A stretch of 64,000 bases of DNA, taken from positions 186,001-250,000 of the IMG/VR virus record IMGVR_UViG_3300027899_000001; one strand, written 5' to 3'. The position numbers and the translations under genes are program-made. Each line of letters starts with the position of its first letter. The stretch's first letter is position 1. Positions 18,201 through 52,151 of this stretch are shown piece after piece. The notes beneath the pieces were generated by a model. That model made no database searches. It was not told the origin of the DNA and saw nothing but the letters and a program-made list of their open reading frames with translations.

Positions 18201-21200
18201 TAGAATTATTACCTACTTCAAATGTTCCTCCTAAGCCTGTAAGTCCTGAAACATCTAAAGTTCCAGTTAAATCGCAATTAACAGCTCGATATCTTGTATA
18301 TGCTTGTGATGAAACAGGATTGATTATTTTATTAAGACTTGGATCATTAGCAGTATAAAAATCAGTTAAATTGGTGAGACAAGAAATATCTAAAGTTCCG
18401 ACTATACCACTATAATCATATAATTGCATAGCTGTAATATCAGCACTTCCATTTGTTGTTCCTTTACTTAATATAACAGTTTTATCTCCAGCAAGAGAAT
18501 AAGTATAATCAAAATTATTAGAATCTCTTGTATTACTATCACCTAAATCCCAATGAAGTGTTCCCGAGGAAACTGTAAAATTAAAGTAAACATCAAATGG
18601 ATAATAAACAGTTCCATATGCATTTGTAACAAATCTTAAAATTTCACCAGCATCACAATTTATATAATATATAAAGGTTCTTCCTGCACTATTAAATAAT
18701 GATGTTAAATGAACTATATTAGTATTTAATTCGCAATCTGTTGGCGACGTGTTAGTACCATCTGCAACATTAATTTCTAAATTTTGAGTAGGCGGATTAC
18801 TACTATAATAAGTATCAAATTTTGCAAATATATCATCTACAGTAAATAAATCTAAAGCACAATTATTTGCGTTAAAAAATGTAAATTCATTATTTATTGT
18901 AGGTAATAATATAGTTGTAAGATTTACATTATTTTCAACTCTAATTCTATTGCTTAATCCTGTAAGTCCAGATACATCTAGTATGCCAGTTAAATTATTA
19001 TCATTTACATCATATTCTGTGAATACTTGTGATGAAACTGGATTAAGTATTTGAGTGAGAAGCGGATTTACTGTAATTTCTAAATCTCCTCCTAATCCTG
19101 TAAGTCCTCTTAAATCTAAAGTATCTGTTAAATTACAATAATTAGCTAAATAATATGAAAAAGGCTGCGATGAATCGGGATTAAGTATATGTGTAAGATT
19201 TGGATTACGAGTAACACTAAATTGAAAAGCTAAACCTGTAAGTCCAGAAATATCTAACGTTCCTGTTAAATTATTCCATGGACAATAATATCCTGAACTA
19301 ATTACATTAGAAGTAATTGGATTAATTATTTGATTTAAGCTTGGGCAATAAGCAACTTGAATATAATCATTTATACCTATAAGATTAGATAAATTTAAAG
19401 TTCCAACTATATTATTTTCATAAAAATCAACTGCACTTATTGCACTGTATCCGCTAGTAGTTCCGTTATATACTTTAACAGTTTTATCTCCTGTTGATGC
19501 GTAAGTATGAGAAAATGTATTTGCATTTACATTATTAGATGCATCACCTAAATCCCAGTTAAGAATACCTGAATATGTGGATAAACTTGGCTGAAATGTA
19601 TGAGTTGAAGAGTTAGTTATAAATTCAAATATAAGATCGCAATTTATATAATATGTGAATGTATGGCCTGCACTATTGAATACTGATGTTAAATGAACTA
19701 TATTAGCATTCATTGAACAATCAGTAGGAGGAGAATTGGTTCCTCCTGCAACATCAATAGTTAAATTTTGTGTAGGAGTATTACTACTATACCAAGTATC
19801 CATTTTTGCAAATATATCATCAACTGTAAATAAATCTAAAGCACAATTGTTAGCAAGTAAAACAACATATTCTCTATTTACAGTAGGAAAAAGTACAGTT
19901 GTAAGATTTGGATTATCATTAATATTAACCCATCCGCCTAATCCTGTAAGTCCTGATAGATCTAAAGTTCCAGTTAAATTACAATAAGATACTATATATT
20001 CTATAAATACCTGAGATGAAACAGGATTAAGTATTTCAGTAAGATTATAATTACTATCAACTCGAAAATCTCCGCCTAAACCAGTAAGTCCTCTTAGATC
20101 TAATGTTCCTGTTAAATTATTATTATCTAGCCAATAAAGTGTAAATACTTGAGATGAATTTGGATTAAGTATTTTAGTAAGGTTATAATTATTATCAATT
20201 TGAAAATATCCGCCTAATCCCGTAAGCCCTGATACATCTAAAGTATCAGTTAAATTACAACCTTGTGCCATATAGTTTGTAAATATAGTAGATGAAACCG
20301 GATTAAGCACATGTGTAAGATTTGAATTAAAATTAACATTAAAATAACTTAAATTAACGAAACTTGAAATATCTAATGTGTTTATTACACCATCTGTATC
20401 TATAAAAACTCCACTAACGTCTATTGCGCCACTAGTTGTTCCTGGATATACCTTTACAGTTTTATTACCAAAATTAACATATGTATGATTAATACTATTT
20501 GCATTTACATTATTAGATGCATCGCCCAAATCCCAATTAAGTGTTCCAGAAGGACCTGTAAAATTAGCTGAAAGAGGCCCTGAATAAGCATAAGTTGTAA
20601 AAGTTAAAAATGGTTCTTGGGCTGGTGAAGTGCAATTTATAGCATATGTAAATGTTTGTCCATATAATAAGAATTGTGCTTCAAGACTAACAATATTCGC
20701 ATTTAAAGAACAGTCTGTTGGTCCAGCATTTTTTGTTCCTGACATATTAACATTTAATGGTCCTGTAGGAGGATTACTTAAATAATATGCATCTAATTTT
20801 GCAAATATACTGTCTGCAGTAGCCGTATTTATAGAACAATCTTGAACGTTGAATTGATCAAATGGCTGTGAAAATACTGTTGGAAAAATTATAACATTAA
20901 GATTAGGATTATTTGCAAGTGAAAAATATCCACCTAATCCGGAAAGGCCAGAAAGATCTAATGTTCCAGTTAAATCACAATTATACGCTTCATATTGAGA
21001 AAATACCTGAGATGAAACTGGATTAAGTATTTGAGTAAGACCATAATTACCGCTAGCCCAAAATGATCCTCCTAATCCTGTAAGTCCCGAGACATCTAAA
21101 ATTCCAGTTAAATTATTATCATTTACGTGATAATAGTTAAATACTTGTGAAGAAACAGGATTAAGTATTTCAGGAAGACTAAAATTATACGCAATATCAA

Positions 21201-24200
21201 CATAATTACCTAATCCAGTAAGTCCTCTTAAATCTAAAGTATTAGTTAATCCTGACATTATTATTTGATAATATGAAAATACTTGAGATGAATTAGGATT
21301 AAGTATTTCAGTAAGATTATAGTTATTATCACACTGAAATCCTCCACCTAATCCAGTGAGACCTGTTAAATCTAAAGTTCCAATTAAATTACAATTACTT
21401 ACAGAATAAGTTGTAAATATTTCAGACGAAACTGGATTAAGTATAGATGTAAGATTTGCATTGTCATCAACTATAAAATTTCCACCTAATCCAGTAAGTC
21501 CTGAAATATCTAAAATATCAGTTAAATTACAACCAGATACAGCATATTGTGTAAATATCTGAGATGAAACTGGATTAATTATCTGTGTAAGATACGGATT
21601 ACTATAAATATTAAATATTCCACCTAAATTACTAAGACTTGATATGTCTAAAGTTCCAGTTAAATTATCATTATTCATATCAATTTGAATAATACTTGTA
21701 TTTCCTGATGTTGTTCCTGCATATACATTAACAGTTTTATTTCCTGCACTTGTATATGTATGTTCAAAACTATTTGAATTTAATATTGATCCATCACCTA
21801 AATCCCAATTAAGAATTCCCGAAGAAGTTGTGAATGTTGGATCAAATGCATCCGTTGAAGCATTAGTAGTAAATTCAAGTATTTTAACAGGTGGCGTGCA
21901 ATCACTATTTATGTAATAAGTAAATGTTTGTCCTGCTCCAGTAAATATAGATTCAAGATGAACTATATTAGCATTCATAGAGCAATCTGTAGGTGCTGCA
22001 TTAGTACCTCCAGCAGTATTAATAGTTAAATCTTGTGTAGGTGTATTACTGCTATACCATGTATCTAATTTTGCAAATATATCATCAACTGTAAATAAAT
22101 TTAATGAACAATTATTAGCACGAAAATGTATAAATTCTTGATTTATTGTAGGTAATAATATAGTTGTAAGATTAAGATTATTATTAATATACATCCGCCC
22201 TCCTAAACCAGTAAGTCCAGATACATCTAATGTTCCAGTTAAATTACAGCTTTCAGCAGTATAATATGTAAATACTTGAGATGAATCTGGATTAAGTATC
22301 TGAATTAAATTTTGATTACCATCAACATTGAAATCTCCACCTAATCCTGTAAGTCCTCTTAAATCTAAAGTTCCATTAAGACTGCAATCATATGCATAAT
22401 AAAATGTAAATATTTGAGATGAAATTGGATTAAGTATATGTGTAAGATTTGGATTATTATTAACAATAAATTCTCCACCCAATCCAGTAAGTGACGATAT
22501 ATCTAAAGTTCCAATTAAATTACAATTATTTGCATAATAAGCTACAAATACTTGAGATGAAATTGGGTTAAGTATTGAAGTAAGATTTGGGTTAGTAGTG
22601 ACTTCAAAATCTCCACCTAATCCCGTAAGTCCTCTTAAGTCTAAAGTATCTGTTAAATCACAATTATATGCATAATAAGTATTAAATATTTGAGATGAAA
22701 TCGGATTAAGTATTGATGTAAGATTAGGATTACTATCAACATCAAAATAATTTAAATTTATAAGACTCGAAATATCTAATGTTCCTACTAAATTATCAGT
22801 ATTTATATCAATTTCAGTAATTCCTGTACTTCCTGATGTTGTTCCACTATACACATTTACAGTTTTATTTCCAACGCTTGTATATGTGTGTGTAAAATTA
22901 TTTGAATTTAATGTTGAGCCATCTCCTAAGTTCCAGTTGAGTGTCCCGGATGAAGTAGTAAATGTTGGATCAAATGCCAATGTTGAAGCATTAGTAGTAA
23001 ACTGAAGTACTTTTGCTCCAACAGGAACACTACCACAACTAGCATTAATATAAATATTTAAAGTTCTTCCGGCACTAGTAAATATAGATCGTAAATTAAC
23101 TATGTCTGTATTATCCCAACAATTTGTCGGTGCTGCATTAGTTCCGCCAATAGTATTTATTGTTAGATTACCAGTAGGAGTATTACTGCTATAATAAGTA
23201 TTAAATTTTGTAAATATATTATCTACTGTAAATTGATCTAATGCACATACACTTACATCAAATGATGTAAATTGTCTATTAATTGTAGGTAAAAGTATTC
23301 TTGATAAATTTGTATTATTTCCAGCTCTAAATACACCGCCCAAATTAATTAATCCTGAAACATCTAAAGTTCCATTTAAGCTACAATTATTTACATAATA
23401 ATTTGTAAATACTTGTGTTGAATTAGGATTAAGTATTTGTGTAAGATTTGGATTATATCGAGCTAAAAATTGTCCACCTAAACCTGTAAGTCCTCTTAAA
23501 TCTAATGTTCCAGTTAAATTACAATCACGTACAGTATATAGTGTAAATAGTCGTGATGAAACTGGATTAAGTATTTGTGTAAGATTTGACTGAGCAGAAG
23601 TTGCAAATGATCCACCTAATCCCGTAAGTCCCGAAACATCTAAAGTTCCATTAAGACTACAATTTTGTACACTATATGCTATAAAATTTTGAGATGAAAC
23701 AGGATTAAGTATCGATGTAAGATTTGGATTATTATCAACAGTAAAAACTCCTCCTAATCCTGTAAGTCCTTTTAAATCTAATGTTCCTGTTAAATTACAA
23801 TCATTTACTTGATAAACCGAAAATGTTCGTGATGTAGTAGGATTAAGTACATTAGTAAGATTTGGATTACTATAAACTATAAGTTGTCCACCAAAGTTTG
23901 TAAGTCCTGAAATATCTAATACTCCATTAAGACTGCAATTATATGCATAATAATTTGTAAATATTTGAGAAGAAACCGGATTAAGTATTTTAGTAAGTTT
24001 ACTATTATTATATACCAAAAATTGTCCTCCTAATCCTGTAAGTCCTGAAACATCTAAAGTTCCAGTTAAACTACAATCATATGCATGATAAGTAGTAAAT
24101 GCTTGTGATGAAACAGGATTAACTATTTGTGTAAGAAGTGAATTACCATAAACAGAAAAAGCTCCACCTAAATTGCTAAGACTTGATATATCTAAAATTC

Positions 24201-27200
24201 CAACTAGATTATCATTATACATCTGTATAGTAGTTATTCCTGTACTTCCTGATGTTGTTCCACTATATACATTTACAGTTTTATTTCCAACACTTGTATA
24301 TGTATGTACAAAATTATTTGCATTTAATATTGAACCATCTCCTAAATCCCAATTTAAAATTCCAGAAGAAACTGCAATTGATGGGTCAAATGCCAATATT
24401 GAAGCATTAGTTGTAAATTGAAGTACTTTTGATCCAACAATATCACAATTTATAAAATATATAAATGTAAATTCTGATTCTGCAAATATAGATTCAAGAT
24501 GAGCTATATTAGCATTCATAGAACAATCTGTAGGCGGTGAGTTAGTTCCGTTTGCTACGTTGACTGTTAAATTTTGATTAGGTGAATTACTACTATAATA
24601 TGTATCTAATTTTGCAAATATATCATCAACTGTAAATAAATCTAAATCACAATTATCCGCATCAAAATCAATAATTTGTTGATTTATTGTAGGTAATAAT
24701 ATAGTTGTAAGATTTGGATTGTTATAAGCATAGAAATATCCGCCTAATCCTGTAAGCCCTGTTAAATCTAATGTATTACTTAAATTACATTCATATGCCC
24801 AATAATATGTAAATACTTGAGATGAATCTGGATTAAGTATCTGTGTAAGATTTGAATTACTATAAACATAAAAACTTCCACCTAATCCTGTTAATCCTGA
24901 AACATTTAAAGTTCCTGTTAAATCACAACTATATGCACTATAATTTTCAAATATTTGTGTTGAAACTGGATTAAGTATTGATGTAAGATTTGGATTAACA
25001 TCAACACTAAAACTTCCACCTAATCCTGTAAGTCCTGAAACATCTAAAGTTTCTGTAAGATTACATTCATCTATATAATATGAATGGAATATCTCAGATG
25101 AAACAGGATTAAGTACATGTGTAAGAAGAGGATTATAACTAAGTGAAAATACTCCACCCAATCCAGTTAATCCTCTTAAATCTAACGTATCAGTTAAATT
25201 ACAATTATATACTTGATATGAAGAAAATGCCTGAGATGAAACTGGATTAAGTATATGTGTAAGAAGTGGATTATAACTAAGATCAAATCCTCCACCCAAT
25301 CCAGTAAGTCCTGAAACATCTAAAGTTCCAGTAATATTAGATAATTCTACATGATAAGTATTAAATACCTGAGATGAAACTGGATTAAATATTTGTGTAA
25401 GTGTAGAATTACTATAAACACTAAGTGATTGTAAATTTATAAGACTTGAAATATCTAAAAGTCCTACTAAATTATCTCCATTCATATTAATGCTAGTTAT
25501 TCCAGTACTTCCTGATGTTGTTCCAGTGTATACACTAACAGTCTTGTTTCCTACACTTGTATATGTATGAGTAAAACTATTTGAATTTACATAAGATGAC
25601 CCATCTCCTAAATCCCAATTTAAAACTCCTGAAGAAACTGTAAATGCTGGATCAAACGATAATGTTGAGGCATTAGTTGTAAATCTAAGTACCTGTGATC
25701 TAACGATATCGCAATTTATATAATACGTAAATATTTGTCCAGCTGAATCAAATATAGATTCAAGATGAACTATATTCGTATTTAATGAACAATCGGTTGG
25801 CGGAGTATTAGTACCACCAGCAACATCAACAGTCAAACTTTGATTCGGGGAATTAGAAGAATACCAAGTATCAAATTTAGAAAATATCCCATCTACTGTT
25901 AGTAAATTTAATGAACAATTATTAGCATTAAATATGTTGAATTCTCCTGATAATGTAGTGGGTAAAAGTATTGATGAAAGATTAGGATTATTATAGACTT
26001 CAAATCCTGATGTTAAATTTATAAGCCCCGATACATCTAATGTGCCTGTTAAATTACAATCATTAGCAGCATAATAATCAATAATTTGAGTTGAAGAAGG
26101 ATTAAGTATTGTTGTTAAATTTGTATTATTTCCTGCATAAAAAATACCTCCTAGATTTGTAAGTCCTTGTAAATCTAAAGTTCCAGTTAAATCGCAATCA
26201 TTTACATAATAACCAGTAAATACTTGAGATGAAACCGGATTTAATATAGTATTTAAATGTGGATTATAATTAACCCAAAACATTCCACCTAATCCGTCAA
26301 GTCCTGAAACATCTAATATTCCTGTAAGATTACAATTACCCGCACTATATGTATTAAATGAACGCGAAGAATCTGGGTTAAGTATTTTAGTAAGATTTAA
26401 ATTATAATCAGCAGAAAAATTACCGCCTAATCCTGTAAGTCCTGAAACATCTAATATTCCTGTTAAATTACAGTTATCAACTTCATAATGACTAAACGCT
26501 TGAGAAGAAACTGGATTACGTATTGATGTAAGATTTACGTTATTCTTAACATCAAAAACTCCTCCTAATTCAGTAAGTCCTCTTAAATCTAATGTATCTG
26601 TTAAATTACACTCAAATGCAAGATACGCGTTAAAAGGATGTGTTGAAACTGGATTAAGTATATGTGTAAGATTTGGATTTTTAGAAACTTCAAACCATCC
26701 ACTTAATCCTGTAAGTCCTGATACATCTAAAGTATCAGTTAAATCACACGTTTGCACATTATATTGTGTAAATACTTGAGATGAAATTGGATTAAGTATA
26801 TGTGTAAGATTAACATTTCCTATTGCTGTAAAATTGCCACCTAAATTTGTTAATCCACTAATATCTAATGTACCTGTTAAATTACAATAATTTGCATTAT
26901 ATAAATTAAATATTTGCGATGAGACGGGATTAATTATTCTATTAATTCCATAATTCTCATTAACAGTTAATTGTGTTAAAGAAATAAGAGAAGATATATC
27001 TAATACTCCTACTATATTATCATTACCCATATCTATTTGAGTAATACCTGTGCTTCCTGAAGCAGTACCTTTATACACTTCAACTGTTTTGTTTCCTACT
27101 AATGTATATGTATGTGAAATACTATTTGCATTTACATTACTTGATATATCACCCAAATTCCAACTAAGAATACCCGATGTAACATTGATTGCTGGATCAA

Positions 27201-27297
27201 ATATTAAAGTGGACGCATTAGTTATAAATCTAAATATAGGCATTCCGGGATGCCTATATTGAGATACTATTCCATGAGTGAGTATAGGGTTATTCAT
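12289..27297 (-). CDS. Giant modular PKD-like + leucine-rich-repeat protein, 5002 aa (putative adhesin/receptor-binding protein)
   Basis: 12 modules, each with a PKD-like domain (WDLGD...HTY...GNKTVxVY), tandem 46-aa double-LRR units (TGTLDVSGLTGLGGxFxVxxNPNLTxILNPVSSQxFxxYxAxxCNL) and a cap (VDDIFAKLDTWY...GGTNxPPTDC...YYINC). Confidence 0.8.
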   Translation of the reverse strand: MNNPILTHGIVSQYRHPGMPIFRFITNASTLIFDPAINVTSGILSWNLGDISSNVNANSISHTYTLVGNKTVEVYKGTASGSTGITQIDMGNDNIVGVLDISSLISLTQLTVNENYGINRIINPVSSQIFNLYNANYCNLTGTLDISGLTNLGGNFTAIGNVNLTHILNPISSQVFTQYNVQTCDLTDTLDVSGLTGLSGWFEVSKNPNLTHILNPVSTHPFNAYLAFECNLTDTLDLRGLTELGGVFDVKNNVNLTSIRNPVSSQAFSHYEVDNCNLTGILDVSGLTGLGGNFSADYNLNLTKILNPDSSRSFNTYSAGNCNLTGILDVSGLDGLGGMFWVNYNPHLNTILNPVSSQVFTGYYVNDCDLTGTLDLQGLTNLGGIFYAGNNTNLTTILNPSSTQIIDYYAANDCNLTGTLDVSGLINLTSGFEVYNNPNLSSILLPTTLSGEFNIFNANNCSLNLLTVDGIFSKFDTWYSSNSPNQSLTVDVAGGTNTPPTDCSLNTNIVHLESIFDSAGQIFTYYINCDIVRSQVLRFTTNASTLSFDPAFTVSSGVLNWDLGDGSSYVNSNSFTHTYTSVGNKTVSVYTGTTSGSTGITSINMNGDNLVGLLDISSLINLQSLSVYSNSTLTQIFNPVSSQVFNTYHVELSNITGTLDVSGLTGLGGGFDLSYNPLLTHILNPVSSQAFSSYQVYNCNLTDTLDLRGLTGLGGVFSLSYNPLLTHVLNPVSSEIFHSYYIDECNLTETLDVSGLTGLGGSFSVDVNPNLTSILNPVSTQIFENYSAYSCDLTGTLNVSGLTGLGGSFYVYSNSNLTQILNPDSSQVFTYYWAYECNLSNTLDLTGLTGLGGYFYAYNNPNLTTILLPTINQQIIDFDADNCDLDLFTVDDIFAKLDTYYSSNSPNQNLTVNVANGTNSPPTDCSMNANIAHLESIFAESEFTFIYFINCDIVGSKVLQFTTNASILAFDPSIAVSSGILNWDLGDGSILNANNFVHTYTSVGNKTVNVYSGTTSGSTGITTIQMYNDNLVGILDISSLSNLGGAFSVYGNSLLTQIVNPVSSQAFTTYHAYDCSLTGTLDVSGLTGLGGQFLVYNNSKLTKILNPVSSQIFTNYYAYNCSLNGVLDISGLTNFGGQLIVYSNPNLTNVLNPTTSRTFSVYQVNDCNLTGTLDLKGLTGLGGVFTVDNNPNLTSILNPVSSQNFIAYSVQNCSLNGTLDVSGLTGLGGSFATSAQSNLTQILNPVSSRLFTLYTVRDCNLTGTLDLRGLTGLGGQFLARYNPNLTQILNPNSTQVFTNYYVNNCSLNGTLDVSGLINLGGVFRAGNNTNLSRILLPTINRQFTSFDVSVCALDQFTVDNIFTKFNTYYSSNTPTGNLTINTIGGTNAAPTNCWDNTDIVNLRSIFTSAGRTLNIYINASCGSVPVGAKVLQFTTNASTLAFDPTFTTSSGTLNWNLGDGSTLNSNNFTHTYTSVGNKTVNVYSGTTSGSTGITEIDINTDNLVGTLDISSLINLNYFDVDSNPNLTSILNPISSQIFNTYYAYNCDLTDTLDLRGLTGLGGDFEVTTNPNLTSILNPISSQVFVAYYANNCNLIGTLDISSLTGLGGEFIVNNNPNLTHILNPISSQIFTFYYAYDCSLNGTLDLRGLTGLGGDFNVDGNQNLIQILNPDSSQVFTYYTAESCNLTGTLDVSGLTGLGGRMYINNNLNLTTILLPTINQEFIHFRANNCSLNLFTVDDIFAKLDTWYSSNTPTQDLTINTAGGTNAAPTDCSMNANIVHLESIFTGAGQTFTYYINSDCTPPVKILEFTTNASTDAFDPTFTTSSGILNWDLGDGSILNSNSFEHTYTSAGNKTVNVYAGTTSGNTSIIQIDMNNDNLTGTLDISSLSNLGGIFNIYSNPYLTQIINPVSSQIFTQYAVSGCNLTDILDISGLTGLGGNFIVDDNANLTSILNPVSSEIFTTYSVSNCNLIGTLDLTGLTGLGGGFQCDNNYNLTEILNPNSSQVFSYYQIIMSGLTNTLDLRGLTGLGNYVDIAYNFSLPEILNPVSSQVFNYYHVNDNNLTGILDVSGLTGLGGSFWASGNYGLTQILNPVSSQVFSQYEAYNCDLTGTLDLSGLSGLGGYFSLANNPNLNVIIFPTVFSQPFDQFNVQDCSINTATADSIFAKLDAYYLSNPPTGPLNVNMSGTKNAGPTDCSLNANIVSLEAQFLLYGQTFTYAINCTSPAQEPFLTFTTYAYSGPLSANFTGPSGTLNWDLGDASNNVNANSINHTYVNFGNKTVKVYPGTTSGAIDVSGVFIDTDGVINTLDISSFVNLSYFNVNFNSNLTHVLNPVSSTIFTNYMAQGCNLTDTLDVSGLTGLGGYFQIDNNYNLTKILNPNSSQVFTLYWLDNNNLTGTLDLRGLTGLGGDFRVDSNYNLTEILNPVSSQVFIEYIVSYCNLTGTLDLSGLTGLGGWVNINDNPNLTTVLFPTVNREYVVLLANNCALDLFTVDDIFAKMDTWYSSNTPTQNLTIDVAGGTNSPPTDCSMNANIVHLTSVFNSAGHTFTYYINCDLIFEFITNSSTHTFQPSLSTYSGILNWDLGDASNNVNANTFSHTYASTGDKTVKVYNGTTSGYSAISAVDFYENNIVGTLNLSNLIGINDYIQVAYCPSLNQIINPITSNVISSGYYCPWNNLTGTLDISGLTGLAFQFSVTRNPNLTHILNPDSSQPFSYYLANYCNLTDTLDLRGLTGLGGDLEITVNPLLTQILNPVSSQVFTEYDVNDNNLTGILDVSGLTGLSNRIRVENNVNLTTILLPTINNEFTFFNANNCALDLFTVDDIFAKFDTYYSSNPPTQNLEINVADGTNTSPTDCELNTNIVHLTSLFNSAGRTFIYYINCDAGEILRFVTNAYGTVYYPFDVYFNFTVSSGTLHWDLGDSNTRDSNNFDYTYSLAGDKTVILSKGTTNGSADITAMQLYDYSGIVGTLDISCLTNLTDFYTANDPSLNKIINPVSSQAYTRYRAVNCDLTGTLDVSGLTGLGGTFEVGNNSNLTRVLNPVSSQIFTTYDVYNSNITGTLDVSGLTGLGGYFDADSNPLLTHILNPNSSQVFDQGYWVYSCDLTDTLDLTGLTGLGSGFDADDNPNLTHILNPNSSQVFDQGYWAQLCNLTGTLDLTGLTGLGGDFEVHTNPNLTQILNPTSSQIFTNYYAYNCDLTGILDVSGLTGLGGDFEVYNNLHLTSVLNPNSSQVFTMYDVGNCNLTDTLDLRGLTRLGGDIYLNYNSNLTSVLNPTSSEIVTSYLIDNCNITGILDVSGFINLSDYLLFSDNINLNTLLLPTLNMPFTYINGNNCALDLFTVDDIFTKLDTWFTSNSPSNGLYVNLAGGTNAAPTDCSMNANIVHLESIFTGAGQTFTYYINCNPEPSVGFLRFTTNAPPAYEIALQFGVWSGILNSNLGDASNNVNSNNFTHTYTNSGNKTINVYPGTTDGSSGLRVIVLWFDYLTGILDVSSLNNLWQLRVDGNPSLTKIINPVSSTVFTSYSASGCDLTETLDVSGLTGLGGYFDVGSNANLTHIFNPVSSQIFTTYYAYDCNLTETLDVSGLTGLGTDFWVYNNPNLTQILNPDSSQVFTTYYAQNCNLTGTLDLRGLTGLAGNFYINNNPNLTQILNPVSSQIFTNYYAYNCSLNGILDVSGLTGLGGGFWVSGNSNLNTILNPNSSEIFTYYGATGCNITDTLDLRGLTGLGGNFYVYNNPNLTHILNPDSSQVFTGYQAYNCNLTGTLDVSGLTRLSGTFFINNNPSLNQILNPISSEIFTHYVVYNCDLTGILDLTGLTGLGGTFQAYNNPLLTQIFYPVSSQIFENFSVYQCNLTGTLDVSGLTELGGQFAASQNPNLTTILLPTINQEFINFYADNCALDLFTVDDIFAKMDAYYSINPPTQNLEINVAGGTNSPPTDCWNNINIDNLQSIFTVAGRTFTCYINCAEPSVGFLQFRTNASTNAFSTNFSVYGTLNWDLGDTSTSVDANVINHIYANPGNKTINVWPGTANGPEDVWQVTVGTDSIIGVLDISCLINLQYVNIVTNHDLTKIINPTSSQIFSTYYANNNNLTGTLNVSGLTGLGGYFDVNNNPNLTQIINPDSSQAFDYYAAYDCSLNGTLDVLGLTGLGGQFRVSGNPNLTQILNPVSSQVFVAYYAYDCNLTGTLDVSGLTGLGEQFLVYTNPNLTQILNPVSSQVFVNYWATNCNLTGTLNLTGLTGLGGQFLVSGNPNLTQILNPDSSQVFTNYYAYNCSLNGTLDVSNLINLSEQFHVYDNPNLTTILLPTINQQFSVFDVHNCALDLFTIDDIFAKLDAWYTLNGPTQSLEIHAERGTNSPPTAEWSNTNIVNLQTIFSNWGQGLLIHINLAPMVEFTTNAYGTLYHTYDIWFAYTTSSGTVETDMGDTTYMNFNNFEYIYSLPGDKHVRLLPGTTAGSTDVTGFDLNENAGVVGTLDLSNLTNLNQFRAAINPSLNTIINPVSSQSFASNFYYAYQSDLIGTLDVSGLTGLGGYFDVDTNPNLTSILNPISSEVFNWYYAHDCSLNGTLDLTGLTGLGGEFDVDSNSNLTKILNPVSSQVFTGYYAYDCNLTGTLDVSGLTNLSGYFEVYNNPNLTSILLPTINQHFNTFDVHNCSLNTSTMDDIFAKLNTWFSLNTPVGELYIDVSCGRGSGPTDCMYNSDIVNLQSIFTNASWLLTIIVNCESVAPIGFLSFTTEASTNAFDPNVTVSSGTLSWDLGDLTTQNANSFSHSYSSPGNKIVNVYNGTTSGPASIRYLYMDADNLVGVLDVSTLSILEDFEVYDNPKLTQIICASTNALFDYFNAWSCNLTDTLDLRPIKRLGFDFEVQNNPNLTEILFHSSAQDMEYFNAWDCNLTGTLDISGLTNINNYMNVHNNPNLTRILFPAFAGRFDTIDASGCGLDLFTVDDVLTKLDTWFTAHNPASYNSLTLNLSKGTNSIPTDSSMNTHLTSLVSIFNTAGATFKYYINE
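12300..27240 (-). repeat. Nested repeats: 138-nt LRR units inside 12 supermodules of about 0.8-1.7 kb
   Basis: 138-nt period seen in DNA (e.g. 23891 vs 24029). Module starts near 27240, 25700, 24430, 23010, 21885, 20615, 19635, 18645, 17080, 15400, 14140 and 13135. Confidence 0.85.
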
Positions 27298-32697: not shown

Positions 32698-33915
32698 ATG
32701 AGTGAAAAATCAATAGGCGACTTCAATTGGGATATATTTGAAGACGGGTATAATGGAAGTACTAAATTAGTTCCAAATCGATCAATCAACGGTAATAACG
32801 AAAAAAATAAATGTTTCTCTCGAGAGCCTTACGCTCAACAACTCTTCGATATCTATACTGAACAAAATTCTGAAATCATCAAAAAAGATCTAAAACCTGG
32901 CGACGTTGTACGGGTAATAGATATTTTCAATATTAAAGATTCATTTATAGATATTGAACTTGCGGGAGGATTAACAATTACAATCGATTTACTAAGAGAG
33001 AAAAAATTCATACAAGTTTTTGGATACACAAGTGCTAAACAATTTACTGACTCATTAAGAGAATATGGTGCTATACGTAATTTTCTTAATAAAGGTTTAA
33101 ACGCTTATATACTTGAAGCTAGTCCTTCAGTTAAAGTTTCATTATGGCAAGGACATCTTAAATCTGTAAGAGATGAATTCATGCAAGAAATTAATAATCC
33201 AACACAAGCATATACTGCAAAAATAGTTGAAGCAAATAAAGGAGGATTTTTTGTTGAGGTTCAAGGAATTGATGCATTTATGCCAGGTTCACTTGCTGCT
33301 CCTAATAAAATAATAGACTTTCAATCTTACATAGGAAAAGAAGTTGTAGTTATGATAGAGGATTTCTTAAAAGAAATGAATTCATTTATAGTATCTCATA
33401 AAAAATATTTGGCTCATATACTTCCAATTAAAATTCAAGAATTAAATACAAGTAAAAAATATATCGGCAATGTAACTGGATGTTCTAAATATGGTATATT
33501 TATTGAATGGGAAATATTTACAGGTTTATTACACACCTCAAAAATGGATGCAGAAACAAAAGTTCAATTTAATGCTCGTAATATTAAGCCGGGTGATCCT
33601 ATTGAATTTTTTATATCTGAAATTACAAAGGATCTTCGCATAATTCTTACGAAAGAAAGTCCAGAAGATAAGTTAAATAAAATTCAAAATTTCATAGTTA
33701 GTTCAAAAGATAAGATTGTAGAATCTTCAGTTGCAGCAGTTATGAATTTTGGAGTCATAGTTAACATAGGAGATATTAACGGATTGATTCCTATTAAGGA
33801 ATTTAAGAAAAATAAAATCATGGCAAATAACTTCGTTTCAGGAGATAAAATAAATGTAATGTTCGATGAGTTTAAAGACGAGCGTATTGTGTTCAAATTA
33901 CCATTTAAAGAATAA
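32698..33915 (+). CDS. rpsA: Ribosomal protein S1 (bS1) homolog, 405 aa
   Basis: Tandem S1/OB motifs (AKIVEANKGGFFVEVQGIDAFMPGS; GNVTGCSKYGIFIE...GLLHTS; VAAVMNFGVIVNIGDINGLIP). N-terminal DFNWD resembles Bacteroidota bS1. Confidence 0.8.
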   Translation: MSEKSIGDFNWDIFEDGYNGSTKLVPNRSINGNNEKNKCFSREPYAQQLFDIYTEQNSEIIKKDLKPGDVVRVIDIFNIKDSFIDIELAGGLTITIDLLREKKFIQVFGYTSAKQFTDSLREYGAIRNFLNKGLNAYILEASPSVKVSLWQGHLKSVRDEFMQEINNPTQAYTAKIVEANKGGFFVEVQGIDAFMPGSLAAPNKIIDFQSYIGKEVVVMIEDFLKEMNSFIVSHKKYLAHILPIKIQELNTSKKYIGNVTGCSKYGIFIEWEIFTGLLHTSKMDAETKVQFNARNIKPGDPIEFFISEITKDLRIILTKESPEDKLNKIQNFIVSSKDKIVESSVAAVMNFGVIVNIGDINGLIPIKEFKKNKIMANNFVSGDKINVMFDEFKDERIVFKLPFKE

Positions 33916-33973: not shown

Positions 33974-35332
33974 ATGCAAGCACACTATATCAGCGAAAAA
34001 TTTACAGAAGAATCAACAGATCCAATTAGTGATCTTGGTATAGGTATAATAAATGTGAGGAAAGAGTTTAAAACAGAAGAAGAATTTCTTCCTTATCTTT
34101 ATAAAATTTCACCAATGATAATAAATATCAAAGATCCTATAGAAATAATATACGAAGGTGATAAAGACTGGATTTTAAAGCCAAGATTCTTTAATAAAAT
34201 AGAAAAATATTGTGCAAAATATATTACAATAAATGGTGAAAGAGGTGATTTTGGATTTAATCCAGGGAATTTTAAAAGATATATCTTAAAGAAAGCAAGA
34301 AAAAAAATACATGAAGCATTTCGAGAAGAATCTGATCCTACAGAAGATTTAGGAATTGGAAAAGTTCGTTGGTTTAACAAAGTAAAAGATTTTTATATAA
34401 ATCAAGTTTTTGGATATGAAGAAGATGCGGAGCTTTTCATGGAAATCGCTGATGATGAATTAGAAGAAATGTTTCAAAATCAAATAGAGCCCGATGATGC
34501 AGCAGACGAATGTTATAGTGATATTAATTTATATAACAAATGGCGTGAAATGTCGGGTATTGATGAATCTTTAAACGAAAAATTTACAGATGAATCCGAT
34601 CCTATACGTGATATGGGAATAGGCGGAGTTTTTCGTAAAAAAGATTTTCAAACTAAAGAAGAAATATTAGATTTTCTTCTATTATATATACCTAGTATTT
34701 TTAAAACAGAAGAAATTCCAGATGATATTGTATATCCTAAAGAAGCGCATCAAGGCGCATTTAAATATAAATATTGGTACGCTTTAACAGATTATTGTAA
34801 AAAATATATTACTTTAAGAAAAAAAGAAGTAATATTTGATAATCTTCTTTGTATAGATTTATGGATAAAGTTAATAAAAATGGGATATCCTAAAGTAGAA
34901 CAAACTGAAAAAAATCATGATTATGGGCGAGAAATAATAATAGAATCGTTAAACGAAAAGTTTAAAGAACAATCAGATCCTATACATGATATGGGTATTG
35001 GGTGGGATGAAAATACTATTGAAGGGTATCTTAAACTACACGGATATTCTAAAATAAATATTGATCGTAGAAAACGAGGACATATACCCGCTATTAACGT
35101 AGAATTTTCTAAAAATGATGTGAATTTTGAATTTGAGATTGTGTTAGACGATGATTGGGCGTCTTGGAGACATCAATTAGATTGGTGGGATGACAATGAT
35201 AAAAATTATGATTGTCAAACAGAGAGATGGACATTGGGAGATAAAAACGGAGAAATAGACGACGAGAAATTTATAGTGTCTATATTAAAACGAAGATTAA
35301 ATAAATATAATAAACAACATGCGCAAACCTAA
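33974..35332 (+). CDS. Four-module SDP-GIG-tagged polyprotein (putative internal head protein precursor), 452 aa
   Basis: Tag copies at 33974-34045, 34307-34360, 34571-34624 and 34949-35002, each preceded by (I/L)xE. Confidence 0.7.
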   Translation: MQAHYISEKFTEESTDPISDLGIGIINVRKEFKTEEEFLPYLYKISPMIINIKDPIEIIYEGDKDWILKPRFFNKIEKYCAKYITINGERGDFGFNPGNFKRYILKKARKKIHEAFREESDPTEDLGIGKVRWFNKVKDFYINQVFGYEEDAELFMEIADDELEEMFQNQIEPDDAADECYSDINLYNKWREMSGIDESLNEKFTDESDPIRDMGIGGVFRKKDFQTKEEILDFLLLYIPSIFKTEEIPDDIVYPKEAHQGAFKYKYWYALTDYCKKYITLRKKEVIFDNLLCIDLWIKLIKMGYPKVEQTEKNHDYGREIIIESLNEKFKEQSDPIHDMGIGWDENTIEGYLKLHGYSKINIDRRKRGHIPAINVEFSKNDVNFEFEIVLDDDWASWRHQLDWWDDNDKNYDCQTERWTLGDKNGEIDDEKFIVSILKRRLNKYNKQHAQT

Positions 35333-37487: not shown

Positions 37488-37503
37488 TGAACCACTTATG
37501 AAT

Positions 37504-38871
37504 ATGAAATTAATTAGAGAAAATATAATAAACGAAAAATTTAGAGAAGAATCTGATCCTATTAAAGATATGGGTATAGGAATGAAACGTATATATTATT
37601 CTTTTGCACCTCAAGAAACTCAATATATTTTATTACTTCGTTGTGAAAAAATGTCTGAAAAATTAGAAGATTTTTTCATACGTCATTCTTTTTTTTGGTA
37701 TAATAAGAATAATGCATGGGAATCATCTTGGGCATATCCAAAAGATAGATGTATAAGAGAAGCTTCAAAAATATTTAAACAAATAGAAAAACTTAAAACT
37801 TACAAAGTTGTATTAGACAGAGACGAAGAAGTCTTTTTTACAGTTCCTGGCTATAATGTAAATGAAGGTGTAGCAGATAAATATACGAGACAAGATCCAC
37901 ATTTATCTCGTGTTCCTGTAGAACATGAAGATTTTGAAAGAGGATATGAGGAAAAAGAAGCTGAAGGAAAACAAAAAGAAGATAGAGATAAAATTGTATA
38001 TAAGGTTAGTAATCATGTATACGTAATGAAAAATCCCACTTCTTTAGAAAAATTCTCTCCCGATTCACGTGCAATTGTAAATAAAAATGGAGATTTATAT
38101 GTTACTACATATAATGTTATGACTCATGATGAAATGGCTCGAAGATTGGAAAAATTAGGAGAATTAAAATATCAAGATAAATGGTGGCAAAAATCTCCAA
38201 CAGAATTTATCACTATTCAAAGAATGTATAAAGAAAATAAATTTGTATTAGGAGAATCTAATGAAGCTATTATGTATTATGTAGATGCTAGTAGAAGAGC
38301 GATATATAATATGCCTGATACTGTTGAATCTGCTAAAAAAGCATTTATACCTTTTCTTGAAAAAGCGAAAAAAGTAAATCCTCAATATCAATTTATTGAT
38401 AAATCTTTAGATGATTTACTTTATTATGCTCCACATCCTGTTAAAGAAAGTTTAATTAATGAGCCTAAATCAATTACACAAGCAGAAAAACAGTTAGCAA
38501 AAGATAGAGAAATGCCCGGACTTAATAAAAGAATATTAAAAACTATTAAAGATAGAGGTGGTGATATCGTCAAAATTTATGCTGTTAATGCAGATTATGT
38601 AAGAGATAAAAAACCAGGATTAAATTTCGATGGATTCACAGATGGAGGACATCATTATGTAACAAGCTTACCCGGATATAAAAAATGGATACCGGAAAAT
38701 GAAATTTGGATAGATGATGTATTTATGATGAAACCGAATGATTTACGAGCAATACTACAACATGAATTTACAGAAAGAAATCTAATGAAGTATAAACATT
38801 GGTCTTATGATAAGGCTCACGATTATGCAAATAAAAAAGAATCAGAATACAGAGAAAGAGTTAAAAAATAA
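37504..38871 (+). CDS. SDP-GIG-tagged multi-domain protein with C-terminal HExxE...H putative metal site
   Basis: MKLIRENIINEKFREESDPIKDMGIG (start likely the second Met at 37504); internal VNE and ESLINE junction-like sites; QHEFTERNLM...YDKAHDYA. Confidence 0.65.
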   Translation: MKLIRENIINEKFREESDPIKDMGIGMKRIYYSFAPQETQYILLLRCEKMSEKLEDFFIRHSFFWYNKNNAWESSWAYPKDRCIREASKIFKQIEKLKTYKVVLDRDEEVFFTVPGYNVNEGVADKYTRQDPHLSRVPVEHEDFERGYEEKEAEGKQKEDRDKIVYKVSNHVYVMKNPTSLEKFSPDSRAIVNKNGDLYVTTYNVMTHDEMARRLEKLGELKYQDKWWQKSPTEFITIQRMYKENKFVLGESNEAIMYYVDASRRAIYNMPDTVESAKKAFIPFLEKAKKVNPQYQFIDKSLDDLLYYAPHPVKESLINEPKSITQAEKQLAKDREMPGLNKRILKTIKDRGGDIVKIYAVNADYVRDKKPGLNFDGFTDGGHHYVTSLPGYKKWIPENEIWIDDVFMMKPNDLRAILQHEFTERNLMKYKHWSYDKAHDYANKKESEYRERVKK

Positions 38872-38927: not shown

Positions 38928-39290
38928 ATGATAAAGGATATTTATATACGCTCTGTAGACGATCCCAATTTTCAATACGGTGTTTTAGAACATTCAGATG
39001 CAATAGAATCAATTATCGCAAAAATAAAAATGTTATTTGGAACTCGTCCTGGACAAGTAATGGGTGATATCGCATTTGGATTAGGTATAGAAGATTTAAT
39101 TTTTGAAACACGCGTAAATAAAATTCAATTAGAAGAAAAAATAAAATCCCAATTTGATATTTATATATCAGAAACAAAAGATTTTAAAATAACGCCTACA
39201 GTTTCATTTGGACGTGCTGATGGATATGATTATGCTATTATAGATGTTTTTGTAGATGATCAAAGATTGATAGGAATATTAGTTAAATAA
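38928..39290 (+). CDS. Baseplate wedge subunit, gp25-like, 120 aa
   Basis: IKMLFGTRPGQVMGDIAFGLGIEDLIFE matches the gp25 T..GE....P.FG..L..LLFE pattern; size and context fit. Confidence 0.75.
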   Translation: MIKDIYIRSVDDPNFQYGVLEHSDAIESIIAKIKMLFGTRPGQVMGDIAFGLGIEDLIFETRVNKIQLEEKIKSQFDIYISETKDFKITPTVSFGRADGYDYAIIDVFVDDQRLIGILVK

Positions 39291-39565
39291 TGAAAGCAAA
39301 AAGAGTATTTGAAAAATTTGAAGAAGGAACTGATCCTATTGATGATATGAACATAGGAAAGGTAGTATGTCCTTATTGTAAAGGCCATGGATATACAGAT
39401 GAACACGATCCTCTTTGTTATGATCCAAGAACAGGAGAACATGATTGTTATGGATGTCCTATACAAGTTCCATATGATTATTGCAATGGAACTGGAGAAA
39501 TATTAAAAAAGGATATTGCTAGACATCAAGCAGAAGAACAAAATTGGGACGATTTGCCCTTTTAA
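39290..39565 (+). CDS. Tagged small Zn-finger protein with SSB-like C-terminal tail, 91 aa
   Basis: MKAKRVFEKFEEGTDPIDDMNIG; CPYCKGHG, CYGCP, YCNGTG; ends WDDLPF. Confidence 0.65.
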   Translation: MKAKRVFEKFEEGTDPIDDMNIGKVVCPYCKGHGYTDEHDPLCYDPRTGEHDCYGCPIQVPYDYCNGTGEILKKDIARHQAEEQNWDDLPF

Positions 39566-39581
39566 AAATAAAATATAAAAA

Positions 39582-40286
39582 ATGGAATATTTTGTATATA
39601 TAACAACCAATTTAATTAACGGAAAACAATATGTTGGAGAACATTCAACTGATAACTTAAAAAAAGATAAGTATTTAGGAAGCGGTAATTTTACAAACGC
39701 AAAAAAGAAATATGGAATACATAATTTTGAAAGAAAAATTCTTGAGTTTTTTCCAACAAAACAAGAAGCATTTGCTGCTCAAGCAAAATATATAATTGAA
39801 TTTAATACATTAGTTCCTAATGGATATAATATAAGCCCAACTGGTGGATGGGGAGCTAGTGGGTGTATTTCAAAGGAAGGAAGATTAAGAATAAGTAAAG
39901 CTAATAAAGGTCATAAAAGATGGTTAGGAAAAACTCATACTGAAGAATCAAAAAAGAGAATGAGTAAATCACACGAAGGAATATTACACACAAAAGAAGC
40001 TAAACAAAAAATAAGTAATTCTACCTCAGGAGAAAAAAATGGAATGTATGGAAAACATCATAATGAAGAAACAAAACAAAAAATAAGAAAAAAGGCTGAA
40101 GGACAAATATGGCCAGAGGAAAGAAAAAAAAGAGTAAGTGAAAAAAATAAAGGAAGAAAATATATAGGTGAATTATATGAAATGAGATATAAAAAAATAG
40201 AATGTCTATACTGTAAAACATTAGTAGATAAAGCTAATTATTCAAGATGGCATGGAGAAAATTGTAAAAAGAAAATAAAAATATAA
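39582..40286 (+). mobile_element. Freestanding GIY-YIG homing endonuclease with NUMOD3-type repeats
   Basis: YFVYITTNLINGKQYVG, YLGSG, GYNI; repeated H(T/N)EE(S/T)K.K(I/M)S motifs. Confidence 0.85.
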
Positions 40287-49436: not shown

Positions 49437-50060
49437 TTAAATATATTTATGAAGAGTTGCAGATCTGTTATCAATTATCTTTGAGCCCTGAATTAAAATT
49501 TTATTATCATTAATATATTCACGAATATATTTATCTGACATACCAGTGTCAAAGCATATAAAATCCCCCCATATTTCTTGAGGCATATATTCTAAAGACG
49601 TCAATTCTTTATTATGAGATATATTAAAATTATCTTTTATTATTCTTGGACAATTTTTTAAAGATAATAGCTTATTTTCAAAAAGCATTATAGATAATCC
49701 TATTTCTTTTGGTATACCTTCTAATGACGTAAGTTGATTTTTTCCAATATACAAATTAAAATCTACTTTTTTTGGAAATCCTTTAAAATTTTTTAATCCG
49801 CTTTCATACATTGATATTGTGCCGTGAATCTCATTAAATTTAATAAATTCAGGAAATTCTCCATTTGGTAAAGGTATGGCATGAAAATTTATACCTCTTG
49901 CATTAATAGTAAAATCATCATTTATAGTAGGCTCATATACATTTTTCTCATATTTTTCTAGCCATTCTTTAATTAACTTGCGAGATCCTATACCCATATC
50001 TCTTATAGGATCAGAATCTTCTCTAAATTTCTCATTTATGTGTTCTCTTACTATTTTCAT
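49437..50060 (-). CDS. Tagged LRR-like protein, 207 aa
   Basis: MKIVREHINEKFREDSDPIRDMGIG; repeats LKNFKGFPKKV, LTSLEGIPKEI, LLSLKNCPRII, LTSLEYMPQEI. Confidence 0.75.
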   Translation of the reverse strand: MKIVREHINEKFREDSDPIRDMGIGSRKLIKEWLEKYEKNVYEPTINDDFTINARGINFHAIPLPNGEFPEFIKFNEIHGTISMYESGLKNFKGFPKKVDFNLYIGKNQLTSLEGIPKEIGLSIMLFENKLLSLKNCPRIIKDNFNISHNKELTSLEYMPQEIWGDFICFDTGMSDKYIREYINDNKILIQGSKIIDNRSATLHKYI

Positions 50061-50377
50061 TGTATTAAATATCTTTCATTCATATCTACACGATAAACAA
50101 CATAACTATTATCATAAAAATTTACCCTTTCACCGCCATTATAACTTTCAAAACTATCTATAATACAAGAACGTTTTTTACCTCCAATAAATACACCTGT
50201 TATTTTTTTACCTTTTAAAGAATTTAAAAAATCCAACCACGAAGATAACCAAAAATTATTACCGCTTACATAATATTTAGAACGTTCTTCTTCAAAATTA
50301 ATACCTCCTATTCCCAGATCATGTATAGGATCTGATTCTTCTTTGAATAATTCATTTATATGTTCTCTTACTATCAC
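50057..50377 (-). CDS. Tagged hypothetical protein, ~106 aa
   Basis: Likely GTG start at 50377 overlapping the upstream TAG: (M)IVREHINELFKEESDPIHDLGIG. Confidence 0.7.
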   Translation of the reverse strand: MIVREHINELFKEESDPIHDLGIGGINFEEERSKYYVSGNNFWLSSWLDFLNSLKGKKITGVFIGGKKRSCIIDSFESYNGGERVNFYDNSYVVYRVDMNERYLIQ

Positions 50378-51183
50378 TAATTCCAATTTATTTTTATAGT
50401 ATATTTAAATCTACGATATCCATTTGGATAACTTTTTATAAATTCTTTAGAATGTTCTATACTTTTTATTGAATTAAAAACATTTAAATATTCAGTTTTT
50501 GGTGCGAACGCCCAACGAGATGAAAAGAGGCCAGAAGATATTTTATAACGTTGTTCTGATAAATACTCCATCATTCCAGATTCTTTTAACCAATAATCTA
50601 CATTATTTTTAAACGCAACATTATATGGAGGATATTCCACAGCAATTTGAAGATTACTTCCATCTATCTCATATTTATATAAATTTATAAAATGGTGGTC
50701 TGTCATTAAATCTGTAAACTTCTGCAGTGAATCTTCAATAGCTTTTCGTATTCCTATTCCTAAATCATATACTGGGTCAGATTCTTCTGAGAATTTTTCA
50801 TTTAGATTGCGATTCCATGTCTTATACCCCATTTTTTCTAATTTATTGAAAAGTTTTGTTATTACAAATGATGTAGTTTGGTCAAATCCTTTCATAGAAG
50901 GTATTTTAATATATTTACTAACATATTTACATAAATCTTCATATTTATCGTTATCTAAATGGTCTTGTGCTGTAAATTCTTTAAAAGACTTTGTATATAT
51001 TTTTAGAATATTATCTGGAATTTTATTAGTTTTATAAATAATAGGAATTACTTTTAATAAAAAATCTGCAGCGCCTTCTAACGTATCAAACGATCTTTCT
51101 ACATAAATACCAATTCCTAAATCACGAATAGGATCTGATTCTTCTATAAATTTCTCATTTATATGTTCTCTTACTATTTTCAT
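50377..51183 (-). CDS. Two-module tagged polyprotein, 268 aa
   Basis: N-terminal tag plus internal LNEKFSEESDPVYDLGIG at 50752-50805. Confidence 0.75.
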   Translation of the reverse strand: MKIVREHINEKFIEESDPIRDLGIGIYVERSFDTLEGAADFLLKVIPIIYKTNKIPDNILKIYTKSFKEFTAQDHLDNDKYEDLCKYVSKYIKIPSMKGFDQTTSFVITKLFNKLEKMGYKTWNRNLNEKFSEESDPVYDLGIGIRKAIEDSLQKFTDLMTDHHFINLYKYEIDGSNLQIAVEYPPYNVAFKNNVDYWLKESGMMEYLSEQRYKISSGLFSSRWAFAPKTEYLNVFNSIKSIEHSKEFIKSYPNGYRRFKYTIKINWN

Positions 51184-51524
51184 CTTTCAAATCCCATCTT
51201 TTTAAATCTCTCCATTAATAGCTCTGGCCAATAATATACTCTACATGCCTGCTCTCCTGTAGAAATTCCTTCAAACGAAATATATTCTGTTAAAAATTTT
51301 TGTATAATTAAAAAATATGTATGATTTATAGCTCCACCATATCTTAAAATATCATCAGGAATTTTTGATGTTTTTAAAAGTTGCGGAATAATAGTTATTA
51401 AATAATCTAAAAATTTGTCTACATTTACAAAATCTCGATGCGCATATAATCCAATATTCATATCTCTTATGGGATCCGATTCTTCTTTGAATGCTTCATA
51501 TATATGTTCTCTAACTAATTTCAT
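51180..51524 (-). CDS. Tagged protein (cargo family A), 114 aa
   Basis: MKLVREHIYEAFKEESDPIRDMNIG; IP....T.KIPD.I...Y...KMG motif shared with paralogs. Confidence 0.75.
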   Translation of the reverse strand: MKLVREHIYEAFKEESDPIRDMNIGLYAHRDFVNVDKFLDYLITIIPQLLKTSKIPDDILRYGGAINHTYFLIIQKFLTEYISFEGISTGEQACRVYYWPELLMERFKKMGFER

Positions 51525-51990: not shown

Positions 51991-52144
51991 ATAGTTTATA
52001 TATTTAGATTTTTATAAACCCTAATGATAAAGAAAATTTAACAAAATTTTAACACCAAAATTAAAAACTATGTTTCTATTAATGAATATATAATTATGAA
52101 TTTGATCTGACGACAAATTTAAATTAAACTAAAATAACTATCTT

Positions 52145-52151
52145 AGGAGGT
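52145..52151 (+). promoter_or_regulatory. Strong Shine-Dalgarno AGGAGGT of the Hsp20 gene
   Basis: 7-nt spacing to the ATG at 52159. Confidence 0.7.

Follow-up and report, generated by a model that had tools for sequence, protein, structure and literature searches.

The internal proteins of phage T4 (IPI, IPII, IPIII and Alt) are diverse apart from a capsid targeting sequence (CTS) and are processed by gp21 (PMC9026906; PMC3012670). The CTS is 10 residues long, with processing determinants at residues 8 and 10, and gp21, which cuts after L/I-x-E, removes it from the internal proteins and degrades the scaffold at many sites (PMC9026906). In the giant myoviruses phiKZ, 201phi2-1 and SPN3US there are around 50 head proteins, and a gp21-like protease cuts at several sites after x-E (PMC5694885; PMC10052503); two SPN3US paralogues, gp53 and gp54, have identical N-termini with cleavage motifs (PMC5694885). 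Here we describe an 18-residue peptide tag that recurs four times in one open reading frame (ORF), at positions 33974-35332 of a 64,000-nucleotide stretch of virus DNA (the window), which itself spans approximately positions 186,001-250,000 of the 405,016-bp IMG/VR contig 3300027899_000001. The tag is a real, widespread and previously undescribed feature. The best-supported reading of the sequence data, which we hold tentatively and at a little below an even chance, is that the tag would be a cargo label and a multi-tag ORF a polyprotein cut by the prohead protease.

By analogy, the T4 CTS and its internal proteins are the closest counterpart in function. In both cases a short N-terminal sequence is carried by unrelated small proteins (here 184 ORFs with 108 module families), and [LI]-x-E lies at residues 8-10, here in about half of the N-terminal tags on the evidence of their sequences. 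Likewise, one and the same genome codes for a protease of the gp21 family, a scaffold and a capsid protein of the gp23 type, and variable cargo genes come and go between conserved genes. Since no sequence resemblance links the tag with the CTS of T4, the analogy is one of function and not of descent. Unlike in T4, the strongest conservation of the tag lies after the putative cut, up to 10 tags stand inside one ORF, and there are about 80 tag copies per genome, compared with a handful in T4; packaging of the tagged proteins is putative. Phages of the phiKZ and SPN3US type differ in another way: long N-terminal propeptides are discarded, each precursor gives one mature product and there is no repeated inter-domain tag.

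Three further systems share parts of this design. According to the summary of Iyer et al. (2017) in PMC9503650, the polyvalent proteins of phages and conjugative elements combine several unrelated effector domains in one virion-borne polypeptide that is thought to be injected with the DNA; the domains are mostly enzymatic, often with embedded proteases or MuF, and they have neither a conserved inter-domain tag nor counterparts as free genes bearing the same tag. Encapsulin targeting peptides are short and flexible, with two hydrophobic residues split by Gly (native ..GGDLGIRK, consensus DGSLGIGSLKG), and dock inside a shell of the HK97 fold, on its luminal surface (PMC7925596). The tag resembles them in having a hydrophobic-Gly-hydrophobic core within a stretch of low predicted local distance difference test (pLDDT) values; the likeness extends over just 4-5 residues, and shell binding by the tag is putative. 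Peptides of the encapsulin kind normally stand at the C-terminus, and the gene of the cargo lies beside that of the shell, whereas the tags here are N-terminal or internal and their genes are dispersed, adjoining the capsid gene cluster in the 405-kb phage only. Finally, viral polyproteins and MARTX-type multi-effector toxins also place several independent functional units in one ORF and have protease sites at the junctions, sites that are putative in the tagged ORFs; the proteases and the biology are different. Literature searches returned no description of this tag family, nor of such a cargo polyprotein design in tailed phages.

The four-tag ORF and its tag

The ORF at 33974-35332 is uninterrupted under genetic code 11, and stop read-through is therefore unneeded. 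Searches of Pfam, PHROG and PADLOC gave no family for it. Its parts are as follows:

33974-35332, + strand: four-tag ORF, 452 aa, ATG to TAA
33989-34045, + strand: tag 1, aa 6-24, begins ISE, one-residue insertion
34046-34297, + strand: module 1 body, aa 25-108, cluster-1 family (~90 aa)
34307-34360, + strand: tag 2, aa 112-129, begins IHE
34361-34561, + strand: module 2 body, aa 130-196, with an orthologue in L032:11136-12083
34571-34624, + strand: tag 3, aa 200-217, ES then LNE, modelled pLDDT ~58-64
34625-34939, + strand: module 3 body, aa 218-322, cluster-1 family, modelled as a compact alpha/beta domain
34949-35002, + strand: tag 4, aa 326-343, ES then LNE, modelled pLDDT 54-68
35003-35329, + strand: module 4 body, aa 344-452

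L-numbers such as L032 denote individual fetched loci.

The initial annotation of this DNA had noted a tag at intervals of ~90-125 aa, each copy preceded by a potential protease site, and that description holds: the four tags are spaced by 106, 88 and 126 aa and begin ISE, IHE, LNE and LNE, the last two after ES. Its claim that modules 1 and 3 are paralogues of the stand-alone gene at 51180-51524 is confirmed with the tags removed, the body of that gene being matched by module 1 at E=4e-5 and by module 3 at E=1e-10, while modules 1 and 3 match each other at E=5e-7. All three bodies belong to one family of 34 members (cluster 1, ~90 aa), 11 of which are free genes, so that a module can indeed exist on its own, as had been proposed; the remaining members occur at every position of multi-tag ORFs. 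The same design was rightly recognised at 50377-51183 and 59454-60500, each of which contains two tags. For the body of module 4, no relative was detectable among the tagged modules.

The tag has the consensus [ILV]-N-E-K-F-x-E-E-S-D-P-I-x-D-[LM]-G-I-G. A hidden Markov model (HMM) built on it finds 16 tags in 11 ORFs of the window, and a back-translated core pattern gives 8 matches in the window compared with 0.00 expected from 100 shuffles. The opening residue of the tag, here called Phi, holds position 0 in 92-98% of tags, and position +2 is E in 94-100%; [LM]-G-I is present in more than 90%, and K, which would be the P1' residue of a cut after Phi-N-E, in 85%. The tag end, D-[LM]-G-I-G, is followed by hydrophobic and basic residues. 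The first tag of an ORF nearly always begins 5-11 residues past the Met, behind a lead-in of the form M-K-[IL]-V-[RK]-E-[HY] or M-[RK]-A-[KQ]-[YF]. In 49% of N-terminal tags, Phi-N-E occupies residues 8-10. Internal tags recur approximately 100-145 residues apart and are preceded by sequence rich in K, E and S, often [IL]-K-E-S. They are as well conserved as the N-terminal ones, with median HMM scores of 36.8 and 38.0 bits, respectively, and in 83 internal tags neither the E at +2 nor the F at +4 ever varies. The mean likeness of tags from the same genome (0.716) exceeds that of tags from different genomes (0.684) by a slight and uninformative gap.

A repeat of this kind could in principle be an element acting at the level of DNA or RNA, for instance a site of recombination or of internal translation initiation, and it is true that modules have been shuffled between genes with tags at the junctions. 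Such shuffling at tags can, however, be a by-product, and the pattern of variation is that of a peptide: conservation tracks the reading frame, with pairwise identity highest at second codon positions (0.82) and lower at third positions (0.58), and Ser, Gly and Leu are encoded freely by the full choice of their codons. Internal tags moreover have no start codon at or before position 0. We consider a nucleic acid element highly improbable. The internal tags are conserved while their synonymous sites vary, and selection is therefore on the peptide and not on the DNA.

Spread of the tag and exchange of modules

A pattern scan of IMG/VR yielded 83 loci on approximately 35 contigs from 14 samples, and the tag HMM was run on six-frame translations of all of them. 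The scores fall into two groups, one of 358 hits that reach at least 12 bits and the other of noise that stays below 7 bits; given this separation, no decayed tags are seen. After de-duplication there are 267 tags in 184 tagged ORFs, most of which (135/184) have a single tag; two to seven tags are found in the remaining 49 (27%). The 405-kb contig contains at least 78 tags, counted in about half of its length, and these form clusters along the whole genome; tagged modules make up ~7% of this genome and are all 'hypothetical' at present. A profile search against 1.84 billion representative proteins recovered 1,658 with E<=0.001, with a maximum of 10 tags in one protein. This number is a minimum, since one tag by itself scores close to the cut-off, and every family member that we looked up is an unnamed metagenomic protein. 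A tblastn search did not find the tag in 50,697 GenBank phage records, including T4 and its relatives, Lak and other published huge phages, and a word-index protein search matched solely the window's own protein.

The body that follows a tag has a median length of 109 aa, and the bodies sort into 108 BLAST clusters, many of them singletons. No Pfam, PHROG or PADLOC model falls on the tag or on most bodies, the sole matches being ankyrin repeats and DUF6267. Besides cluster 1, the larger families are one with leucine-rich-repeat (LRR)-like bodies (35 members, in all cases the final module) and one with ankyrin repeats (28 members); zinc-ribbon-like bodies are also present, together with approximately 100 families without an assigned function. 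DUF6267, which is the only non-repeat Pfam family on tagged proteins, ends some of them, namely L029:5103-7295 (- strand) and P0037 (E=1e-69 and 1e-58), and a PDB sequence search with the DUF6267 protein returned no relative. The protein with 10 tags has 1,203 aa and is encoded at 10001-13612 of locus L084 (ENA contig k141_332119, 139,829 bp). The nucleotide-metabolism genes of that locus, which we list below, may be worth a look for DNA base modification.

Several observations bear on whether the modules of the target ORF are units in their own right. Module 2 has an orthologue, 50% identical, as the first module of the two-tag gene L032:11136-12083, a gene that follows the one for the baseplate wedge in a related phage. 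In one relative the slot of the target ORF is taken by an untagged gene of 226 aa, in another the slot is empty, and because its content varies in this way we regard the ORF as an accessory cassette. A slot after the portal gene holds one four-tag ORF in L077, three single-tag genes in L026, two such genes in L022 and one in L005, and module 4 of the L077 ORF is 46-49% identical to free genes in L005, L022 and L026. This fused-versus-free case came from inspection of the portal slot; an automated search for fused-versus-split orthologue pairs turned up a single nonsense polymorphism. In that instance the same two-tag gene, found in two samples (L014:660-1607 and L032:11136-12083), differs by one base that changes codon 66 from CAA to TAA, which suggests that cargo genes are individually dispensable.

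A structural prediction by AlphaFold2 agrees with this picture as far as it goes. Modelling was confined to aa 190-345, with an alignment of 34 sequences, because an alignment of the full length stacked every homologue on module 3; the whole 452-aa ORF modelled without an alignment reached a pLDDT of 34 and was unusable. Within the modelled segment, module 3 forms a compact alpha/beta domain (pLDDT 87-97) and both flanks, each consisting of linker plus tag, have pLDDT values of 54-68. Foldseek searches with the module 3 model against the PDB and BFVD found no fold match (best E=1-2), and the ESM Atlas gave composition-like hits only. The initial annotation had expected independent domains joined by flexible tag linkers, of which the compact module and its low-confidence flanks were recovered; separate packing of the modules is not directly seen in a model of module 3 alone. 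That the modules are not packed together is instead indicated by the family of free and fused members, the shuffling of module 2, the variable slot and the orthologues at the portal slot. On these grounds, the target modules are independent units.

The same observations raise the question of whether multi-tag ORFs simply arose by accident, when a lost stop codon joined paralogous genes that lay side by side, with the internal tags being functionless relics. Tandem tagged genes often have overlapping stop and start codons, the same slot can hold one fused gene or several separate ones, and the nonsense polymorphism shows that some tagged genes can be dispensed with, all of which would suit such an origin. 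It is, however, difficult to reconcile with the frequency of multi-tag ORFs and their length of up to 10 tags, with internal tags that have stayed like N-terminal ones though the bodies between them have diverged beyond recognition, or with the clean division of HMM scores. The synonymous variation also speaks against gene conversion. We therefore judge accidental fusion to be very unlikely.

Prohead protease, scaffold and the Phi-N-E motif

The cargo-label reading depends on a protease that could cut at the tags. Walking along the contig turned up no head genes, but T4 head proteins used as queries against the fetched loci did reveal them, ~110 kb from the target ORF and on its own contig:

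L054:6707-9052 (contig ~306.7-309.0 kb), - strand: prohead protease-scaffold fusion, 781 aa
L054:4852-6624: gp23-like capsid protein, with the protease-scaffold gene immediately upstream

The first ~150 residues of the fusion protein are a gp21 homologue (28% identical over 113 residues) whose His motif ELDHP and Ser motif SISSRA align with the corresponding motifs of T4 gp21; the rest is a scaffold-like region of ~620 aa with repeated N-E-W-T..I-A-K motifs. The sequence [ILVM]-N-E occurs 11 times in this protein compared with 1.36 expected from shuffles (approximately eightfold), and in 13 orthologues with 56-82% identity it occurs 7-13 times compared with 0.9-2.0 expected, so that enrichment ranges from 5- to 12-fold across the 14 proteins. 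The capsid protein has three such sites (0.25 expected), two of which are within the N-terminal 43 residues. There, L-N-E (aa 4-6) and A-L-N-E-A-x-[ML]-G-G (aa ~40-48) are kept in nearly all capsid orthologues, and Phi-x-E is found at the same N-terminal place in Lak, PTm1 and other relatives. For comparison, 21 of the 23 untagged window proteins combined have 15 sites against 10.8 expected, so that most untagged proteins of the window do not depart from expectation. T4 gp22, used as a positive control, has 21 Phi-x-E compared with 11.1 expected; this roughly twofold excess is shared by related scaffolds, with a preferred middle residue that differs from scaffold to scaffold. Because it is enriched in the scaffold and conserved at the N-terminus of the capsid protein, Phi-N-E is probably the motif of this phage's prohead protease. 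Every junction of the target ORF has Phi-x-E, and it is the enrichment that points to a narrower specificity for Phi-N-E.

Based on these observations, the tag may be a portable address label that marks varied small accessory proteins for incorporation into the prohead, with its first three residues, Phi-N-E, forming the cutting site of the gp21-type protease. A multi-tag ORF such as 33974-35332 would then be a polyprotein precursor cut inside the prohead. In the target ORF, cuts after E8, E114, E202 and E328 would release an 8-residue peptide and products of 12.6, 10.4, 15.1 and 14.9 kDa, each starting with K/A-F-x-E-E-S-D-P-I-x-D-[LM]-G-I-G, and these products would be small enough to exit by way of the tail, along with the DNA, and then to affect the host. 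We infer the identity of the cleavage motif, and with it the cutting of tags and the entry into the capsid and ejection of tagged proteins, from sequence. The initial annotation had already proposed that a head protease cuts one precursor into four small proteins; what stood of this comprises the independent modules, the constrained internal tags, the encoded gp21-type protease and the Phi-N-E enrichment, with cleavage, packaging and products of 10-15 kDa retaining the status of predictions.

A number of points weigh against this reading. The 15 best-conserved residues of the tag follow the proposed cut, whereas the targeting part of the T4 sequence precedes it, and the Lys that occupies P1' in 85% of tags is never found at the scaffold sites. 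The equation of the capsid L-N-E with the E65 site of T4 gp23 had to be dropped, since a pairwise MAFFT alignment was ambiguous and does not place L-N-E there. At least 78 modules per genome far exceeds any set of internal head proteins known to us. Tagged genes are dispersed over the genome; they adjoin the protease gene in the 405-kb phage only, an adjacency that is not conserved among orthologous loci; and the genes beyond the portal slot are not head genes. The neighbours of the 10-tag gene in L084 are a DnaB-like helicase, an Mre11-like phosphoesterase, a nucleoside deoxyribosyltransferase and a dATP/dGTP pyrophosphohydrolase (PF04447). That tagged proteins are in the virion at all is likewise something that we infer from their sequences.

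This dispersal could be expected if the tag were a docking motif for a partner other than the capsid. The hub might be a host protein, a phage chaperone, a protease adaptor or a compartment, with the variable modules bringing targets to it and multi-tag proteins serving as multivalent adaptors. Bodies of the ankyrin and LRR kinds are typically used to bind targets, tagged genes are found next to replication genes as well as genome-wide, and the very large number of tagged modules would also be accommodated. However, the partner in such a scheme is hypothetical, the match between Phi-N-E and the substrates of the head protease would be accidental, and the position of Phi-N-E at residues 8-10 of N-terminal tags mirrors the T4 CTS (PMC9026906). 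Docking outside the capsid seems to us unlikely, though far from negligible.

Alternatively, tagged proteins could be packaged without being cut. The tag would bind capsid or scaffold, multi-tag proteins would be intact beads on a string that thread through the tail tube domain by domain, and each further tag would add binding strength. Flexible tags, as modelled, and modules of small size suit this reading, and conservation of internal tags would be explained with no need of a free N-terminus. In addition, D-[LM]-G-I-G is similar to L-G-I, the core of those encapsulin targeting peptides that attach to the interior of an HK97-fold shell (PMC7925596). What is left unexplained is the near-invariant Phi-N-E at the start of the tag, the very sequence that is enriched in the scaffold and the capsid propeptide, and we regard packaging of uncut chains as unlikely. 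The encapsulin-like end also offers a lead as to how the part of the tag kept after a cut might attach to such a shell. Cleavage and shell binding could thus be combined, such that in one lineage of megaphages the tag would have become a universal peptide for loading cargo into the capsid, having a protease site in front and an encapsulin-like shell-binding core (D-[LM]-G-I-G) behind. Dozens of small host-directed proteins would be loaded in this way, many as polyprotein 'cartridges' of up to 10 modules cut by the prohead protease. This more elaborate proposal is speculative and, in our estimation, unlikely.

Neighbouring genes and implications

The remaining tagged genes of the window, along with two untagged ones of interest, are listed here:

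37498-38871, + strand: single-tag protein, 429-aa body
39290-39565, + strand: single-tag Cys-rich protein, 91 aa
42183-42662, + strand: single-tag protein with a slightly degenerate tag, directly after the baseplate wedge gene
49437-50060, - strand: single-tag protein with a leucine-rich-repeat-like body (family of 35)
50057-50386, - strand: single-tag protein, 109 aa
50377-51183, - strand: two-tag protein, module 1 of the cluster-1 family
51180-51524, - strand: stand-alone tagged cluster-1 module, 114 aa
51799-51990, - strand: short tagged ORF, 63 aa, with a perfect tag and hardly any body
53549-57001, - strand: untagged protein, 1150 aa, [ILVM]NE 6 compared with 1.35 expected
58750-59451, - strand: single-tag ankyrin-repeat protein
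59454-60500, - strand: two-tag protein, module 2 being ankyrin repeats
60497-62653, - strand: untagged protein, 718 aa, in the same operon as the tagged ankyrin genes, [ILVM]NE 5 compared with 0.79 expected

The short ORF at 51799-51990 lies in an otherwise non-coding gap of 600 bp (51524-52159) and is probably the remnant of a tagged gene. The two untagged genes flank the tagged ankyrin genes on the same strand, 60497-62653 overlapping the start of 59454-60500. Neither has a family match, and with a significant excess of the motif each is a candidate to be another substrate of the protease or an internal head protein.

On the evidence of its sequence, the 405-kb phage is a myovirus-type megaphage related to the Lak megaphages; its baseplate wedge and capsid proteins are 41% and 48% identical, respectively, to those of Prevotella Lak phages. 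The window has a G+C content of 29%. Stop-codon recoding of the Lak kind was considered for the window and rejected because code 11 leaves long ORFs intact, including one of 5,002 aa, and because TAG is used alongside TAA and TGA at gene ends, where it terminates three genes. The 5,002-aa ORF (12289-27297, - strand) has no Pfam entry on record and is flanked by ORFs of 1,341, 1,578 and 1,751 aa, the last of which is a collagen-like tail fibre with numerous spurious ORFs on its opposite strand.

The target ORF is situated between a gene for an S1-domain protein and conserved genes of the virion module, the latter being a head-tail adaptor-like gene followed by the baseplate wedge gene. The S1 gene (32698-33915, + strand), directly upstream, encodes a 405-aa protein of S1-like repeats that is ~80% conserved in the relatives L032 and L048, an odd content for a virion gene module. 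A homing endonuclease gene (39582-40286, + strand; phrog_314, E=6e-43) sits between the small tagged Cys-rich gene and the baseplate wedge gene, and similar endonucleases occur elsewhere in the same module of related phages (L032:4602-5381 and L032:6796-7599).

Even if no cutting takes place, the tag unites at least 1,658 clusters in one family, which neither Pfam nor PHROGs contains and whose members must share a binding partner. The T4 CTS has already been tried as a means of loading foreign proteins into capsids, and if the cargo-label reading is true the 18-residue tag would be testable for the same use. It would also supply a one-step sequence rule with which to predict the virion cargo of uncultured megaphages, and would add a polyprotein strategy to the biology of tailed phages. 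Should the tag in addition bind the shell, encapsulin-type loading would be joined to that strategy in a tailed double-stranded DNA phage, providing a natural link between phage capsids and encapsulins. More broadly, the cargo-label reading, if true, would show how the largest phages bring a big and fast-evolving set of proteins into the cell alongside their DNA.

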